In this document: positions 16,624-25,800 of the stretch, piece after piece
Layout of the letters: every line of letters starts with the position of its first letter
Position numbering within the stretch: position 1 is the first letter of the stretch
From: Klebsormidium nitens
Lineage: Eukaryota; Plantae; Klebsormidiophyceae
DNA length: 64,000 bases
NCBI GenBank assembly: GCA_000708835.1
Contig: DF237053.1
Location: 138,023 to 202,022 of the forward strand
Reading direction: 5' to 3'
The notes under the pieces: model-generated
The model's database searches: none
What the model saw: the letters and a program-made list of their open reading frames with translations, nothing else
Told to the model about the DNA's origin: nothing
Program-made: the position numbers and the translations under genes

Positions 16624-18182
16624 ACTTGTCTCCGCTTAAGCCTGTAATTCTGTCATGCACCCTAGCCCTGATAGCCGGTGAAAGGGTGCTACTACTTTGA
16701 ATGAGCAGCATGCGGCACAGGGATAGGAGACGCTTGGAACCATAATGTCATGCGATTTTAGTGTTGAAATTATCCGTACAACCAAATCATGCACCTAGTG
16801 ACGTTTGACATTGGCTACGTACGTGACCTTATGGTCGCTCCCGTATCGAAATACTGCATGCTCCGGGATGGGCTGGTTTGAAGCAGACGTCAAGTCGAGC
16901 AAATTTGCACATGCTTGCGAATGCACTTAATGTACCTAAACATGGCATGTGTTCGTATGGGCTATATACGCCTCTTGATTGAGTTGTGTGTTGGATCTAT
17001 GTTAACGCGATTTGATCATCAAATCTTAAATTTCAATATGTGGATTGATTGCCTGGTACAGGAAGTTCATGAGTCTCATCTACATGCTGGCCCTAGCTAG
17101 CTAAAGCAGCCGTTCTATATCTTGCAAATGATCGATGGCACATATGTTGTCAAAATTGTGCCCGCGGTGTTTGAAGATGCCGAACCACAGACTGAAAAGA
17201 GTTTCTGGGCCGCATGCAGCCAGCGTTCCTTCTTGTCGTTGACGCCTTGTTGAGCGCAAAGAGTTGGCTCAGTGATGCACAGCTTGAGAAAGAGAAACGA
17301 AATCTATTCTTTCGAGTCTGAGATACAGCTGTCCGAATTGACATGCCATCAAGAGCCATTTTTCGAAAAAGGAGGTAACGTTTCTCTTACTTCGACAAGT
17401 CCAAATCGTTGCTTTTGGTCTGAAGAGCAAGGACACGAAGTTCAAAAGTGGGAAGGAACGTGTTGACCGTTTCCGAACTGAAAGCCAAGGCATACGAATG
17501 GACGATTCTTATCCTAGCCGGAATCTACTGCAGAGGCATCTGTTCCTTCACTTCATAGACGGTTTTGAGACCCTCGATGAGGATTTGATTGAAAGTACCT
17601 AATTCATGACAAGTTTCATGCTGGTTAGACACGTGTCAGTGCGGAAGTGCTTCTTTATTTCGAGTGGGACGTCCAGAGACTCCAGACGGAGCTCCGGAGT
17701 CCGTCGGCACCTTCCATTCCGCGGCCGAGCCAGGAGCCTGCGCAGTGCGGAATGCGGATGCCTAGCCGCGGAAATCGACGAACTCTACCTTCAGTACGTC
17801 ATTATGGCTGACGCCATCGTTCAAGTGGTGTCATGCTTTCGTACTGAAAAGAGAAAGCGAGCTGCATGTGGCCGAAGTTGAACGAACTCCACAACGATGC
17901 GCCGTACTATCGAAAAGTCAAACTTTGAATGATTCACGCAAAAGGGTCGTCGTCTTCGAGTGCCACGTTCACATTGCACAGCATCAGCAACACAGTCCAA
18001 AATGTACGGTCTAAATATTTAGAAATTTCAATCATGCAAGTCAATCATGTAACACGACCATGCATGAGTCATGACAATTGTGGAATTGATGGCGAGTCTG
18101 CGACCCTCTGATGCCGACACGTCTCTTACCGATGCCTACGCGCCTGCCAGACGAGAATTTAGACAAGAGAATCAAACGCAGG

Positions 18183-18632
18183 ATAGGTCTCGTTTTCATG
18201 TTGACAAAGGGCAAGGGAAAGCACCCGGGGGACGGGTAGGGTTGGTATGGGGGTTAGGTGTGTGTACGGTGCAGAGCGGGTGACATTTAGTCGGTTTAGG
18301 TTTTTAGGTTTGTTCGTGCCCCCGAGCACGATCCTTAGTCAACATGCGCTTAGTCAACATGGAATCGAGAAGTATAAACGCAGGTCGACCTTCTGACCGC
18401 CGTTCAAGCAGTAGCCCACAAGCCGCAATTTGGATACTTCTCGATTTCATGTTGACTAAGAGCATGTTGACTAAGGATAGTGCTCGGGGGAACCAGCAAA
18501 ACTAAAAACCTAAACCTGGGAATGACGCGCTCCGCACCCGTACCCACCCTAACCCCCAAACAAACCCTAACTGTCCCCCGGGCACTTTCCTTAGTCAACA
18601 TGGCCCTTAGTCAACATGAAATCGAGACCTAT
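18183..18632. mobile_element. Head-to-head pair of ~190-bp MITE-like elements with TIRs and TA flanks
   Basis: 18183-18375 is the near reverse complement of 18434-18632. Each copy has its own TIRs (xxTCTCGATTTCATGTTGACTAAGG...) and is flanked by TA on both sides. No ORF. Confidence 0.75.
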
Positions 18633-19605
18633 GCAAATTGGGCTGCAAATGTTGTTGTAGTGTCTCTGGAAAGTGGGGGGGTACAGGGGGGAATTGGTCA
18701 AACGACTCGGATAGAACATGGAGAGATTGGTCCCTCCGAGCACGACAAAAGGTCGAAGGCCCGCTTTTGCGTCTCTGATAACTTCGTAGTACATTTCTCA
18801 AGCGCCAGCGCCCGTCAGACACCAGACGGCCATTCGTCAGCTGCAAAGCTTATCTTGTCACACGCCTGCCAAGAGGGAGCTTAAGCTGAGAGGGAAATAT
18901 CGTCGAAGGTCTGCTGTACCTAGTCGCTCCGAGTAGATTCTCGATCCAGGATGGCAACCACCAGGTGAGCTCCTGTAGTTGTACCAACGGTTTCTGCTTC
19001 TTGTTCCGACTTCTTTTCCTTTCATACATGGATGAGTGCTGGACCAGTTCAGGGTAAGACCGCGTTCAGAGACCTGTTGAGACTCTCATTGCGAAAGTTA
19101 GTATATATCCGGGATCCAGGGCCTTAGAACCCAATTGCAGTTTGGCTTCTGCTCATACTGAGCAAAGCTGACCTTGTGGCAAGTTTTTCTCTGCTTGATG
19201 CTCATCGCAGGAGTGACCTTTTGTGGGGCAATTGGTTTCTTGGTTGCACTCACTTGACCCTCCAATATTGCTGTTTGCTAATGTCCTGCTTCAGTTAAGG
19301 AACACTCATGATCGAGGGTCTCAATGATTGCGCAAAACCGATATCATTCAGCCAGCCAAGTTCGCCTCGTCGCCTCTGCACTTGAAAGTATGTTGTGCTA
19401 ATCAAACCTTGAGAATACTTGTACATGACACCTTAAGGTATTCTTCGTGTCCACCAACCAAGACTCCCCATCTAAATTATGCCAGAAGGCCACAATTACT
19501 GTTCAAAGCCTGATGCTGAGGAACAAATCCTCGTACTAAACCCCACAAAATCTCTTTTGCATAATTCAGATCGTCCCTTCATTGACAAGGCCTTCGGCGC
19601 CCAAA

Positions 19606-22189
19606 ATGGACATCAAGGGGGACCATCTTTCCATCCAGGACATCATCGATGTCAGCCTCTTGGGCCGCCACGTGCCGCTCAGCCATGACGTGGACGACCA
19701 CGTGGCAGCAGCCCACCAGCTGATTCTCGACCGTCTGAAGGCGGGTCAACCCATGTATGGGGTCAACACCAATTTCGGGGGGCTGGCAACCAAACAGCTC
19801 ACGGCAAACGAAGCCTCTGCTCTTCAGGAGAACCTCATCTGGGGCCTCAAGAGCGGGGCGGGTCGCAAGCTGCCCCCCTATCTAGTTCGTGCAGCCATGC
19901 TCATCCGCGCAAACGCGCTGGCCAGGGGGGCTTCGGGCGCCCGCAGGATCCTCATCGAACGGTTGCTGGCGTTCCTGAATGAGGGTGTGACACCTGTCGT
20001 ACACGAGCTGGGCTCTATTGGCGCGAGCGGCGACCTTATTCCGCTGGCGGAAATTGTCGGCTGTGTCATTGGCCTCAGTAAGGCCTACCGGGTTGTGGAC
20101 CAGAATGGGAGAGAGCTCGACGCCCTGGCAGCGCTTGCTGAGATGGGCCTTGAACCACTTAGGCTGGAGGTATGTGACTTTCTCCAGTAATTCTCAGGTT
20201 GGCTGCAAAAGCAAGCCATCTCAATCCTACAGTAGCTCAAGTGTTTTGAAGTGCGTGCTGATCACGAGGTTTCGTTGCGGTTTCCGAGACTCTTGATTGA
20301 GATGAAGCTTTTCGGACAAGAGAACTTATCATCCAGAGTATCATTGTGAACTTTAGGCAGACCTGTCAAAGCTTCGAAGATTGTCAACAGTCTCTTTCTG
20401 ATTTAACGTTGCTGTCCTCGAGGAAGCAGCTTCAATTTCAAATTTTTCAAGACATCAATTAGTGAAAGCTGCACCATCTTTTTCGCAGCGGAAAGAAGGC
20501 CTCGCGCTCGTGAACGGCACCTCCATGATGAACGGCATCGCGTGCCACGTCATCACCGACGCTCGCAAGCTGCTGCGCCTCTCGCTGTACTTGCACGCCT
20601 TCTACATCCAGGCGCTCGAGGGATCCCCCGAACCCTTCTCCGCGTTTCTGCACCAGTGCAAGCCGCATCCGGGGCAGGTTGAAGCTGCCAGACTCATGCG
20701 CGAGCTGCTAAAGGGCGGGAAGGTCCTTCCGAACGCCGAGCAAATGCTCGAATCGGATAAGGCGCTGATTCAAGACCGGTACTCTATTCGCTGCCTACCG
20801 CAGTACATGGGACCGATCCTGGATGCGTTCGCTCTCATTGAGAAGCAGGTATGGCGTTGCACGTAGTGAAGGTGCAAGGCGGTGAGGTTTGCTGGGTTGC
20901 CTCATTAGTGGCGTTGTGCTCTGGTCATAGTTGTTGGGTGGTGTTTGATGCTTCAATGCGCTTCATCTGAATAGCTTGCATTGGTCAGCGGCAGTCTCTT
21001 CGTGCAAAAGTAACTTTTGAGCATATTCCCACGTGTTCGCATTCTGAGCTGTCTTCCCATTTTTGTTGCTGTAAGGCCTCGAGCACTTTTTGTGTTCATC
21101 CTTTGTCTCCAGATTACAGAGATATTAAATAGGCCTTTGGCTCATATGCAGGTTGAGATGGAGGCGAACTGCGTGGACGACAATCCGCTGGTGGACGTGT
21201 CCGCCGGAATGGTGCTAAACGGGGGCAACTTTCTGGGGCAGTACATCGGAACCGGAATGGACCTGTTACGATATCACGTCGCCTTACTTACGAAGCATCT
21301 TGACACACAGATTGCAATGCTAGTTACGCCCAGCATGAACAACGGGCTGCCTGCGTCGCTAGTTGGCACACGAGCTGACGATACGGGAATCAAGCTCGGC
21401 TTGAAAGCATTGCAGATCTTCGCCAACTCTGTCCTACCCCGGTTGATGCACCTCGCTTCCCCGATAACGCACCTCTTCCCGACGCATGCGGAGGAGTATA
21501 ATCAGAACATCAATTCGCAGGTTTGTCACTTATTGGCTGGCTCATATGAGCCCTCATTTCACCTTGATCGTGCAACACGGGGGCTCGCAGGAGCATGCCT
21601 TGTAAAGAGATGGTATTTGCCTGCTCGATATAGATGGGAAGTGATGAGATTCGTGGCCACAAAACTCAGTAAGCAACTCAATAACGTCCGAGCACAATTG
21701 GATCTGATCGCAATGCATACTCTCAGACTGTTGTATTCTGAACCCCTCACCTTGCTCGTTTCCAACTGTGACTCGAACTTTCAAGAAATATTGATCGCGC
21801 CTCTCTCATCCTTAGCTCGCAGCTCTGGCTCTGTGTCTAGAAGGCCGTGTTTCAATGATTATTCTGCAGGGTTCAACTCTGCCAACCTGGCAAGAGAGTC
21901 TGTTGGTCTTCTAAGAACCTACCTTTCGGCTGGGGTGATTTTTCCGATTCAGTCAATAGAGCTACGCGCTTTCGCTAGGGAGGGGCACTAACATGGCGAG
22001 GCATTTTTGTCGCCTGCGTGTCGCCCTCTGTATAACGCCTTTTACAAGGCATTTGGGCAGCCCAATCAAACGACGAAGCCGTTCGTCGAAAAGAATGGCG
22101 ACCAGGATCTTGCAGACTTGATTTCGAGATTGGAGATTGACCTTGCCAGCGTGGACAGCAGGTTGTTAGACAGCGTCTGTGAAGGTTGA
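19606..22189 (+). CDS. PAL: Cyanobacterial-type MIO-dependent aromatic amino-acid ammonia-lyase (PAL-like), possibly disabled at the 3' end
   Basis: Exons 19606-20169, 20489-20848, 21152-21520, 21870-22189. Motifs: GQPMYGVNTNFGG (catalytic Tyr loop), GSIGASGDLIPL (MIO Ala-Ser-Gly), KEGLALVNGTS, KPHPGQ, QDRYSIRCLPQYMGP, DNPLVD, GGNFLGQY and HAEEYNQNINSQ. These are colinear with Anabaena/Nostoc PAL as recalled. The last junction is off by 1 nt and there is an in-frame TAA at 21989-21991. The start may lie upstream (acceptor at 19569). Confidence 0.88.
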
Positions 22190-22804
22190 AGTACAAAATT
22201 TGATTCAAACGCGTAAGATTACAACATAGGACATATACGACGGTACAGGCTTTCGTGCATGTAGCGAACAAGGAAGCCCATATATACATGTGTGCATGCA
22301 CACGAGTCACCGTCCAGTGCGCTGTAGGCCGCCTGGGGCCACATTGCAGTAGACCTGACCCTCTTGTATTTAGTACAGGATCCAGATGTCAGAGCACCCC
22401 GCGAGCATGGCCATACGTTGTGGACTCGAGCTTGCTTCAATGAAACTAGATCATGCAACACGTGGCTGTGATCTCATTCAATCATGACCGAAGGTCAATA
22501 TCTGGTCTTCGAAGTGTATAATTCATATATCTCAGCAGCCCGATCAGCATGGCCATCTTGTGAACCCGGGCTTGCTTCAATAAAGCTGGACTGCAACATG
22601 TAGCGGTCCCACGCAATTATGAAGGTCAATTTTTGGTCTTCGAGCTCATGCTCAACGATCAGTGTCCCGACATACCAAATTTATAAGAGGCTTACTTCAA
22701 GCCGTCCTTCCGTAGCCTTTCGCTCAAATTGCTCTACAAGAGCGCAAGTTGTTAATATGTCTATCTAAACCATACCGCAAGGTGTTGAACACGCAAAAAC
22801 ACTG

Positions 22805-25800
22805 TCACCTTTTCGGTGCGTTTTGTGGGTTACTAGATTGGCTTCCCGCGCTGGCACCACTCCCGTGCCCACTCGCCTTTTCTTCGACAAAAGCCCCCAG
22901 CTTCTTCAACCCCGTTCCCACGTTCCCGGCAAACCGTTTCCCCATTGCAAGCGCCTTGTCAGCCGCCGTAGATTCGGGGGGGTGGTTTCCGCTTGCTCCT
23001 GCACCCCCCGTTTCCTTGCCATAAGGTCCATGCACTTGGTCATATGATACATAGCCGGGGGGAGGGGGCGGAGCCACGAGCCCGGGCCCCAGACCCCCCT
23101 GATTCGAAGCCGGAGGACTCGCATAAGGAGGTGGCTGGCTTTTATAAGCAGACGACGAGCTCCCATAAGGCTGGCTTTGATAAGCTGGCTGCGGACTTGC
23201 ATAGGCCGGCGGGCTGGGGCCTTCGAAGCCTGGTCTAGGAGGAGGCGCGGCATAAGCGCTCTGAACTGGATAACCCATCTGAACCGGGGGGCTATGACTC
23301 GGGGGGAAAGCGTATCCTGGAGGGGGGGCAGGTCGAACCATGTCCGCAATTGGGGGGGGAGGAGCGGTCTGCGGGTAACCCTGGTTGTAACCCGGGGGGG
23401 CGGACTGAATCATTTGAGGCCTTTGCTGGGGGAAGAATAGGCGCCCGATGATTGTTTGGGGGGTGCTGTTTGGCCGGCCGTTTGGGGGGGGCCTGTTGCT
23501 TAGGAGGGGGGCGCGGCGGCAGCATTCCAGTAGGAGACTGAGGACGATCATAAACAGGCTGGCGATGACGTAGACTAGGAGCAGAGCTGCGCAGATGGCG
23601 GCGGCTCTCGGGAGGTAGTGACCTTTGACGGGGGACTCGCCCTGCAAAAAGCGAAGCTTATCGGGTTGACTTGCATGCTAAGCCTTTCGACCGTGCAGAG
23701 GGTTTTTGGAAGAGTTTCCTGCGCATTGAAGCATTTGCAATTTTCTGAGGCAGCATCCGGAGGACCTGAGACCTGACAAGCCGCCTACGACTTTTGAGGC
23801 AAGTGCACAACTATGCGCTGCGATACTCAAGGGGTTTGGCTGCGCCTCTGAAAATCGATATCTCAGAAGTTTCCCCAGCGGAAACGCTTCTTGTCCTTTC
23901 ACAGGAGCAAGTAACACAACAAGTCGAAACAGGCATCAACAAGTACCGAACACAATACGACATGTCGGGAGCGTAGACGGCTGCAATATTTCTGACACCC
24001 GGAGGCAACTCGATCACACAAAAGAATCTTTTTGTCCACGGGCATGTATTGCTCCTGAAACATAATCGAGGGGTGAAAGCAACAATCAGAGCTACCTGAT
24101 TCACTAAGCAACAAAAGAGCACCCTGGAGACGAGATGAAACTCAAGAAAGATATAGTAAGCCAGAATAATAAGCTCCGACAAAGACTTAAAACCCCAACC
24201 CAAAAAGATACCTGCTCCGCACCCCTACCCACCCTAACCACCAAACTAACCCTACCCGTCTCAGTGCAGTCAACTTCTTATTATCTCGGCGTATCATTCA
24301 TTTAGTGAGTTCGATGGAGACGAGTACTTACGCAGTGGGCAGATGCAAAAGCTTGGAACCCAGCAATCGCCCAGGCAAATCCTCCAATGAAGAAGAGAAC
24401 GAAGAAGGCTACCCAGGGGTCGTTCCAGAACACGTGGCAGGCTCTGCAGAGGGGCAACGTCTCAGTACCAGAATATACTTTTCCACAGCAACGAGACTAG
24501 CAGAATCATTGGTCTCGTACAAACGTCCTATGCCTATGGGGCTCAGCAAAAGATAGTCATCTCGGTCTGCAAGCAATTGTTGCGATGGTCGCAAGATCTT
24601 TGTGTCTCGAAGTTCAATACGTTGGATCAGGATCAGTCAGAGGACCACAGTCAACTGAAATTTTAAGGCCCCAGACAATTTGAGCTTAGTGTCCCTGACC
24701 AAGTGTAAAGTCGACTGACTTTGAGATTGGCATAGCTGAGATTGATAAGAATTTGAGGCTCTTTGACACAAATCAAGGCATCAGGACCAGTTGCTACCAT
24801 GTGCCTCAAGAACCTTGAAGCGCTCAGTAACTTGTGAAGCTGCTGAGATAAAGCCCCTGTGGAGTGGCTTGATTTGTTGCAGAAATTCGACAGATAATGT
24901 AAAGTGACAAGTAATCAAGCCTTCTACAGTAAATTGACATGACCGATTGTTTGAAGGGTGACAGCCTCCAAATCAATTTCAAAAGGCACCATAACCACCT
25001 CATTACAGAAGCTCCCAGCTAGGCCTCCCCTTCGTAAGCTTGTACTCGGTTCACCCACCTTGCCATAGGCCCTGCATCTGCTTCCACCCTTGCATCGTAG
25101 GGCCGGGAGAAGTACGTGTATATGTGGACTGCAAACCCGACGAAAAACAGGTTGATCGCCGCAGTGACGTAGAAGAAGGCGGGGACATATGTGTCGCAGT
25201 GGTTGTGGATGTTAAGCAGCCCCAGAACGATGAAGACGACCCCAGGGATTGCGTTCATTAGGACGGTGAACCCCAAGAATAGAGGGGACGGCCTGGAAAA
25301 GGAAGAGGAGTTTTGCATTGGGGCGGGGGGGGGGGTATCAAGCACCGAATAGTTGCTCAGAAGTGTCACCCTTGAACCTCCGTTACTTCGAGCTAACCTC
25401 TGAGAACTGAGGAACCCCAGGAACATTGGAACCATGACACTTCTTGGGTTGCGCTCATGCTCCTTAAGCAGCACACGCCAAGAGAAGCAAACTTGAACGG
25501 GACAGTGTGGCGAGCATGTATGTTCCCCAACATTGAAGGAAAGTTTCTTGTCTCAGCTCCTTGCGATAGCTGCTATGATCCTCAAGGGACATGCTTTGCA
25601 GAGTCAGTCCTTGCCAGCAGCTTATGATCCTCGAATGGAATATGCTTTGAACAACCAGTCCTGCCACCATCTTATGGTGCTAATATAGAACATGCTTTGC
25701 ACAATCAGTCCTGCCACCACCTTATGGTGCTAATATAGAACATGCTTTGCACAATCAGTCCTGCCACCAGCTCATGATGCTGATAGAAGTTTGACTAGTC

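Follow-up and report, generated by a model that had tools for sequence, protein, structure and literature searches.

A glycine at the selectivity switch links a truncated aromatic amino acid lyase of Klebsormidium nitens to a bacterial-type subfamily of plausibly new specificity

We analyzed a stretch of 64,000 nucleotides from the genome of Klebsormidium nitens (assembly GCA_000708835.1, contig DF237053.1, positions 138,023 to 202,022 of the forward strand; hereafter the window, whose own numbering is used throughout) and found that its lyase gene, kfl00104_0290, encodes a glycine at the residue that distinguishes the ammonia-lyases for phenylalanine (PAL), tyrosine (TAL), and histidine (HAL). 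The gene corresponds to the public protein P0001 ("Aromatic amino acid lyase [Klebsormidium nitens]", 479 amino acids), which a word search found to be 100% identical to the window. In the reading we favor, to which we assign a probability of roughly 0.55, kfl00104_0290 would be a member of a distinct bacterial-type subfamily of aromatic amino acid ammonia-lyases with a 4-methylideneimidazole-5-one (MIO) cofactor. This subfamily, marked by Asn83 and Gly107-Leu108 and usually also by Cys110 and Phe416 (numbering of the PAL of Anabaena variabilis, AvPAL), would supply aryl-acrylates as starter units, and its gene would have been acquired by the Klebsormidiales and later broken in K. nitens; Gly107 would then be inherited and selected, not a product of decay.

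On the forward strand, positions 19825–19866 translate to QENLIWGLKSGAGR, within which the ten codons for ENLIWGLKSG occupy 19828–19857 and the glycine codon GGC occupies 19843–19845. When exon 1, the exon that holds the start codon, was compared with the sequences of the PDB by phmmer, the best solved-structure matches were AvPAL (2nyn, 3czo, 5ltm) and the PAL of Nostoc punctiforme, NpPAL (2nyf), with E values around 1e-42 (1.4e-42 to 2.6e-40 over the four entries). The stretch ENLIWGLKSGAG aligns without gaps onto TNLVWFLKTGAG of the Anabaena enzyme (2nyn, 3czo) and onto TNLIWFLKSGAG of the Nostoc enzyme (2nyf). Since a residue count along chain 2nyn_A places Tyr78 and Phe107 where the literature expects them, the glycine occupies the position of Phe107. 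Among the solved structures, none was found with a switch glycine; 9eq5, which ranks fifth among the matches, has phenylalanine there (…NLLAFLS…). That the stretch is coding follows from its location inside exon 1 of a spliced and transcribed gene, from the match of this exon to the Pfam family PF00221, and from the presence of the cofactor-forming triad. PF00221 is recognized in exons 1, 2, and 3 with 179.5, 127.1, and 87.6 bits (E = 1.3e-52, 1e-36, and 9.9e-25; cut-off 27.3 bits), which assigns the protein to the MIO superfamily, and the K. nitens lyase retains, in addition to the Ala-Ser-Gly triad, Tyr78, Asn223, Tyr314, Arg317, Glu448, Asn451, and Gln452. The motifs on which the argument turns are located as follows:

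19756–19773, forward strand: Tyr-loop YGVNTN, with the catalytic tyrosine (AvPAL Tyr78 position) at 19756–19758 and an asparagine at the AvPAL Gly83 position at 19771–19773
19843–19848, forward strand: switch pair Gly-Leu at the positions of AvPAL Phe107-Leu108, as read from the translation, the PDB alignment, and the homologue survey
20023–20031, forward strand: Ala-Ser-Gly triad that forms the MIO cofactor, located by alignment

The switch residue is phenylalanine in PALs, histidine in TALs, and serine in HALs (10.64898/2026.09.15.751672, a preprint). Phe107 lines the pocket of AvPAL (10.1101/2021.06.06.447205, a preprint), touches the ring of the substrate, and is held to set specificity. 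Replacement of its counterpart Phe137 in PcPAL by small residues lets in bulky aryl-alanines, and engineered PALs with a small residue at this site shift their preference toward bulky para-substituted substrates (PMC6055856). The K. nitens lyase bears none of the three established marks: its Gly-Leu pair is neither the Phe-Leu of PALs at positions 107–108 nor the Ser-His of HALs, and the histidine of TALs (His89 in RsTAL) is likewise replaced by glycine. The initial annotation of this DNA had already reported a glycine at the PAL/TAL switch, which the translation and the gapless alignment to Phe107 confirm; the background it gave on Phe107 and Phe137 agrees with the three sources cited above, and its claim that Gly-Leu is the signature of neither a PAL, a TAL, nor a HAL is supported.

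To place this residue among homologues, we pooled the hits of an exhaustive HMMER search, for which exon 1 was the query, and of a word search with P0001 into a set of 266 relatives and examined Tyr-loop and switch of every one; 263 proteins cover both sites. Asn83 and Gly107 occur together in 33 of the 263 and are both missing from 228, two proteins have Asn83 without Gly107 (both with Ala107), and Gly107 without Asn83 was found in none. The Tyr-loop of the subfamily reads YG-x-x-T-N-F-G-G, as opposed to …T/S-G-F-G-G in the other relatives. A comparison of 26 members with these other relatives identifies four subfamily-specific positions: glycine to asparagine at 83 and phenylalanine to glycine at 107 (26 of 26 each), serine or alanine to cysteine at 110 (24 of 26), and methionine to phenylalanine at 416 (25 of 26). 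None of the other relatives in this comparison has Asn83. The K. nitens protein has Asn83, Gly107, and Leu108 and in this respect carries the subfamily signature, but it deviates at the two remaining positions with Ser110 and Leu416. Intron-containing orthologues are present on two eukaryotic contigs of one Joint Genome Institute metagenome, L004 and L093. The L004 protein is 68% identical to that of K. nitens, and P0005, a fragment of L093, is 69% identical to it over exon 1. Both orthologues combine Asn83 with a Gly-His switch (Gly107, His108), and L004 has Cys110 and Leu416. In a scan of one genome per species, a single subfamily member, from a metagenome-assembled genome (MAG) of the Polyangiaceae, was found among the best 80 loci.

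The phylogeny agrees with these residue patterns. In a tree of 138 rows, all Gly-Leu rows, K. nitens, L004, a protein of Gigaspora rosea, and two divergent rows form one clade (SH-aLRT 100). A tree of 70 rows under LG+C20+F+G4 recovers the clade of Gly-Leu rows and K. nitens at 99/99, unites K. nitens with L004 at 100/99, and nests this pair in an otherwise bacterial subclade of 13 rows at 100/98. Forcing K. nitens and L004 onto the Nostoc/Anabaena-type PALs, a group that was chosen after inspection of the tree, lowers the log-likelihood by 192 and is rejected by the approximately unbiased (AU) test (p = 5e-5). The K. nitens lyase consequently lies outside the clade of the characterized cyanobacterial PALs and inside the Asn83/Gly107 clade. 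The survey of W-G-L homologues that the initial annotation had proposed thus has a clear outcome: the motif defines a clade (support 99/99), and its glycine is coupled to Asn83.

Two further observations emerged from the same set of relatives. P0201 of Gigaspora rosea, an arbuscular mycorrhizal fungus, is a protein of 601 amino acids that is annotated as histidine ammonia-lyase; although nested within the Asn83/Gly107 clade, its residue 83 is cysteine and its switch pair is Asp-His. This placement points to a further, independent passage of the bacterial subfamily into a eukaryote. Moreover, the bacterial MIO relatives of the "cyanobacterial type" display other conserved switch pairs, among them Phe-Met, Pro-His, Ala-His, Ser-His, and, in Nostoc, Microcoleus, and Herpetosiphon relatives, Tyr-His. 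Several of the types other than Phe-Leu form subclades of their own, and most of these proteins are annotated simply as PAL or HAL.

The genes around the bacterial members speak to the type of reaction. We examined 11 genomic contexts, which are given here with the handles of their contigs or loci:

L001: lyase, acyl-CoA synthetase, aromatic amino acid hydroxylase, methyltransferase, and a hybrid of non-ribosomal peptide synthetase (NRPS) and polyketide synthase (PKS)
L002/L003: lyase, a gene resembling ketoacyl synthase III (KAS III), and a giant PKS
L005: KAS III, followed by a ligase-lyase fusion
L014 (the Polyangiaceae MAG): KAS III, ligase-lyase fusion, FadB-like hydratase/dehydrogenase, thiolase
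L007: PKS about 6 kb from the lyase
L008: lyase immediately upstream of a PKS that opens with a loading pair of adenylation domain and acyl carrier protein (ACP)
L095: KAS III, ligase, ACP, lyase, PKS
L096: beta-branching cassette, lyase, PKS
P0211 contig: FAD oxidase and O-methyltransferase
L009 (6901–10641): lyase (Tyr-loop TNY) beside an Fe-S flavoenzyme of 667 amino acids of the enoate-reductase, BaiCD, or bilirubin-reductase type
L094: uninformative neighbors

In eight of the 11 contexts, the lyase adjoins or is fused to acyl-CoA ligases, KAS III, or PKS/NRPS loading modules. This arrangement fits a lyase whose aryl-acrylate product is activated as a starter unit, and for this reason it favors lyase over mutase chemistry. 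The hydroxylase and methyltransferase neighbors hint at substituted rings, and NCBIfam typing of the L001 hydroxylase did not tell 4-hydroxylation from 3-hydroxylation. The beta-oxidative set of L014 would suit plain phenylalanine, and the flavoenzyme beside the L009 lyase hints at a catabolic or respiratory, not a biosynthetic, use of an aryl-acrylate.

Because acyl-CoA ligases, KAS III, and PKS/NRPS loading modules recur as neighbors or fusion partners of the bacterial lyases, the subfamily would most likely deaminate an aromatic L-amino acid; the resulting aryl-acrylate would then be activated with CoA or AMP and used as a starter unit. Phe107 normally shuts the ring pocket at its far, para side. 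Its replacement by glycine, together with a polar asparagine nearby, would be expected to alter the ring that is accepted, for instance in favor of para- or meta-substituted or larger rings. On the basis of these residues, the new specificity that the initial annotation had proposed is plausible; the narrower proposal that its substrates form a new class, either ring-substituted aryl-alanines such as O-methyl-tyrosine, m-tyrosine, or a derivative of 3,4-dihydroxyphenylalanine (DOPA) or amino acids with a larger ring, is put forward tentatively.

In the alga, the gene would have been taken up from bacteria by an ancestor of the Klebsormidiales and would have gained its introns afterwards. Its present structure was mapped by aligning contigs of four sequencing runs, each from a different study, to positions 19450–22350. 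Within this interval, the contigs of all four runs show zero base differences from the genome and three GT..AG joints. The runs themselves are not recorded as RNA; the intron-free contigs are best explained as cDNA, with a processed DNA copy as the alternative. The following elements were delimited:

18932–18964, forward strand: 3' end of an upstream non-coding exon of the 5' untranslated region (UTR), with the donor GT at 18965; loose contig ends of all four runs match 18932–18961
19570–20169, forward strand: exon 1 with the start codon (ATG at 19606), residues 1–188, including Tyr-loop, switch, and MIO triad; from contigs, open reading frame (ORF), and Pfam
20170–20488, forward strand: intron 1, 319 nt, GT..AG; joint in all four runs, position shared with L004 and L093
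20489–20848, forward strand: exon 2, 120 codons; from contigs and Pfam
20849–21151, forward strand: intron 2, 303 nt, GT..AG; from contigs, position shared with L004 and L093
21152–21520, forward strand: exon 3, 123 codons, with the active-site motif NQNINSQ at its end; from contigs and Pfam
21521–21869, forward strand: intron 3, GT..AG, with a length of 349 nt that is not divisible by three; joint supported by contigs of every run, no counterpart in L004 or L093
21870–21914, forward strand: start of the last exon in the spliced reading, 14 out-of-frame codons (GSTLPTWQESLLVF) and the stop TAA at 21912–21914; from contigs and P0001
21869–22189, forward strand: C-terminal relic of about 105 residues in the homologous frame, with TAA at 21989–21991 and the ancestral stop TGA at 22187–22189; from comparison with relatives

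Translation likely begins at the ATG at 19606, because the upstream exon contains an in-frame TGA at 18887–18889; between this stop and 19606 there is no in-frame ATG. The same TGA, together with the fact that the contigs remain contiguous with the genome upstream of the joint assumed by the gene model, renders the N-terminal extension of P0001 doubtful. Residues 1–13 of P0001, MLTKGKGKHPGDG, come from within a repeat cluster at 18180–18640. This cluster consists of nested inverted and direct repeats with arms of up to 83 nt that are 92% complementary; it resembles miniature transposable elements and sits immediately upstream of the 5' UTR exon of the lyase gene. On the other side, a proline-rich ORF of 280 amino acids without a Pfam match (22805–23647, reverse strand) converges on the 3' end of the gene.

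Two lesions separate the K. nitens gene from a complete one. In the genome, exon 3 is in frame with the homologous reading of the last exon, and intron 3 between them measures 349 nt; splicing therefore shifts the frame. Translation of the spliced mRNA gives NINSQ-GSTLPTWQESLLVF up to the stop at 21912–21914, and P0001 ends identically. The second lesion lies in the homologous frame, where K. nitens has TAA at 21989–21991 at a site at which the relatives have tyrosine (TAC). The product lacks the C-terminal 105 or so residues, which correspond roughly to AvPAL 453–567, and thereby the approximately 100 residues that follow NQNINSQG in a complete polypeptide; full-length relatives measure 531–607 amino acids. 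Because of this loss, the truncated product is probably impaired, that is, inactive or crippled. In the sequenced strain, a well-transcribed mRNA would thus yield a C-terminally short protein by way of the frameshift between exons 3 and 4, with the TAA as a further block in the homologous frame. The initial annotation had raised the prospect of an uncharacterized algal pathway, a proposal that is weakened by an mRNA encoding a protein without its C-terminal portion.

Both lesions are derived in K. nitens, as L004 and L093 are free of them. The last exon of these two orthologues, 89% identical between them at the DNA level, crosses the site of intron 3 without interruption and ends at the same position as the ancestral stop; at this site they read CAG GGT TTT AAT, and K. 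nitens is one base short. The disruption looks recent, judged from the absence of decay in exons 1–3, where K. nitens departs from three and L004 from two of 108 family-invariant columns. The GC content at third codon positions (GC3) amounts to 0.70–0.79 in exons 1–3, 0.46–0.48 in the introns, and 0.53–0.62 in the C-terminal relic. Intron 3 could be an insertion or an intron of recent origin. Contigs that retain it occur in two of the four runs (X1 record 7, X5 record 14). Read in the frame of exon 3, it is free of stops over 116 codons (21521–21868), a length equaled in 71 of 20,000 composition-matched shuffles, while the other two frames contain 6 and 9 stops; its GC3 of 0.46 is intron-like. 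Two ways of rescuing the reading frame were considered and dropped: a genetic code in which TAA is sense, since the spliced frame shifts upstream of that codon already and the relatives carry TAC, and an alternative donor at 21525 that would restore the frame, which no contig uses. Two metagenome scans, one with P0001 and one with an alignment of exon 3 from K. nitens and L004 as the query, retrieved no closer algal relative, and a tblastx comparison of L004 with the window found no shared neighboring genes.

Several observations weigh against a distinct subfamily with a starter-unit role, and some of them lead to its strongest competitor, namely that the enzyme is an ordinary PAL or PAL/TAL whose pocket is re-packed by Phe416 and Asn83 such that L-phenylalanine or L-tyrosine still fits, and that the subfamily differs by ancestry only. 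The remaining pocket and catalytic residues of the subfamily (Leu104, Leu108, Leu171, Leu219, Asn223, Ile423, Glu448, Asn451, and Gln452) are the same as in the other relatives and PAL-like, and Phe416 and Asn83 could refill the space vacated by Phe107 and keep phenylalanine as the substrate. The Polyangiaceae set of L014 with its ligase-lyase fusion, FadB-like enzyme, thiolase, and KAS III resembles a route from phenylalanine to benzoyl-CoA, and because of this context a plain PAL or TAL activity retains some credence. The enterocin genes EncP/H/I/J form a beta-oxidative route from cinnamate to benzoyl-CoA with a similar layout. Moreover, the coupling of positions 83, 107, and 416 has essentially one origin on the tree, so on the sequences at hand it is a case of conservation within a clade and not of repeated co-evolution. 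Literature searches on the gene identifier, the switch glycine, F137G/F107 variants, and myxobacterial PALs found no characterized member of the subfamily, either assayed or crystallized. Finally, as regards the loss in K. nitens, the four read sets could stem from one shared laboratory strain, in which case the lesions might be strain-specific.

Nevertheless, we regard the ordinary PAL as the less probable solution. Phe107 is in direct contact with the substrate ring at the position that sets specificity, small residues at this position steer engineered PALs to bulky para-substituted substrates, and two contexts contain ring-modifying enzymes: hydroxylase and methyltransferase in L001, O-methyltransferase and FAD oxidase on the P0211 contig. 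The literature treats kfl00104_0290 as a PAL candidate, and among the curated models the PAL model TIGR01226 indeed scores highest for the K. nitens protein, yet with 343 it stays far below the cut-off of 519. This test is a weak one, because a Nostoc-type PAL relative fails it as well (409), the model being tuned to plant PALs. More generally, none of the NCBIfam function models for PAL, HAL, TAL, tyrosine aminomutase (TAM), and phenylalanine aminomutase (PAM) reaches its cut-off with the K. nitens protein or the bacterial members; for K. nitens, the hutH model TIGR01225 gives 323 versus 539, and the TAL models FlxA and BagA give 265 versus 700 and 259 versus 1000.

A 2,3-aminomutase that retains the MIO chemistry and, instead of acting as a lyase, provides a non-ribosomal peptide with a beta-aryl-amino acid appears improbable. 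According to one source, aminomutases have Cys or Ser, both small and polar, where AvPAL has Phe107, and some contexts, such as L001, hold NRPS modules for which a beta-amino acid would be a conceivable substrate. Most contexts, however, hold enzymes that act on acrylates, namely acyl-CoA ligases, KAS III, enzymes of beta-oxidation, and the flavoprotein of the enoate-reductase type, and the equivalog models for aminomutases score far below their cut-offs with the K. nitens protein (TIGR03832, 246 versus 501; TIGR04475, 285 versus 800; TIGR04473, 222 versus 1250). The last candidate, a private degenerative glycine in a decaying pseudogene, which the initial annotation had named as the outcome that would undo its proposal, could draw on the disrupted last exon and on the terminal branch of K. 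nitens, which in the 138-row tree has roughly double the length of the one leading to its intact relative (0.43 versus 0.22), but it is refuted by the homologue survey and carries next to no weight: the survey recovered Gly107 in 33 database relatives, intact bacterial genes among them, L004 and L093 have it as well, and exons 1–3 of K. nitens keep 105 of the 108 family-invariant residues.

Setting the Asn83/Gly107 subfamily beside known systems sharpens what is shared and what is not. Like AvPAL and NpPAL, to which a bacterial member aligns from end to end (E = 1.4e-176), its members have about 560 amino acids, no plant-type shielding domain, the MIO triad, and the same catalytic and most of the same pocket residues. 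They differ in Gly107 for Phe107, Asn83 for Gly83, Cys110 (Ser in K. nitens), and Phe416 for Met416 (Leu in K. nitens), and they form a separate clade whose union with these PALs is rejected by the AU test. Arabidopsis PAL3 offers a precedent, though not a relative: it is likewise an MIO lyase that was filed as a PAL and has a non-canonical residue at the specificity site, and it was reported to be a 3-carboxy-tyrosine ammonia-lyase without PAL or TAL activity (10.64898/2026.09.15.751672, a preprint). It differs in being a paralogue of plant-type PALs with tyrosine at this site and a glutamate-to-serine exchange, whereas the K. nitens enzyme is of the bacterial type, has glycine, and keeps Glu448. 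In terms of gene logic, the subfamily resembles EncP of the enterocin, StlA of the stilbene, and FlxA, the TAL of the flexirubin pathway, in which a lyase is followed by a CoA ligase and a KAS III or PKS; these bacterial lyases supply the starter units of polyketides or aryl polyenes. The K. nitens protein is set apart from the FlxA and BagA TALs by its scores far below the cut-offs of their models, and none of EncP, StlA, and FlxA is known to us to have glycine at the switch.

Parts of this picture are already published. In the passages that concern the gene, de Vries et al. 2021 (10.1101/2021.05.27.445924) describe kfl00104_0290 as a "promising PAL candidate" that falls among bacterial PALs including NpPAL, and they remark on a persisting similarity between the 3' part of the locus and the C-terminal stretch that the product lacks. 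The corresponding passages of this work and of Bierenbroodspot et al. 2024 (PMC10849092) report the short product (480 amino acids) and its grouping with bacterial sequences and propose a transfer from soil bacteria, and the latter propose a bacterial origin of the PAL-like genes of Klebsormidiales. These sources thus already cover the gene, the short product, the affinity to bacteria, and the idea of horizontal transfer. The switch residue is unmentioned in those passages of papers on kfl00104_0290 that a term search brings up; as judged from them, the Asn83/Gly107 signature, the separation from characterized PALs, the PKS-linked contexts, and the exact lesions appear to be new.

A scaffold in which Gly107 occurs naturally, along with residues that compensate for it, would be of interest to enzymology and biocatalysis, given that small residues at this position open engineered PALs to bulky aryl-alanines. 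The case of Arabidopsis PAL3 illustrates that an odd switch residue can mask a different natural substrate (10.64898/2026.09.15.751672). For the biology of the streptophyte algae, the weight of kfl00104_0290 is at stake: the gene has repeatedly been cited as a PAL candidate in the debate on the origin of the phenylpropanoid pathway, and this citation has to be read in the light of a non-PAL residue at the specificity position, a bacterial subfamily that is linked to starter units, and a truncated product in NIES-2285. If the subfamily indeed acts on a new class of substrates, the only "PAL" found in Klebsormidiales would not be a PAL, and an item in the short list of evidence that algae entered phenylpropanoid metabolism ahead of the land plants would turn out to be a bacterial starter-unit enzyme, gained by horizontal transfer and already broken in the reference strain.

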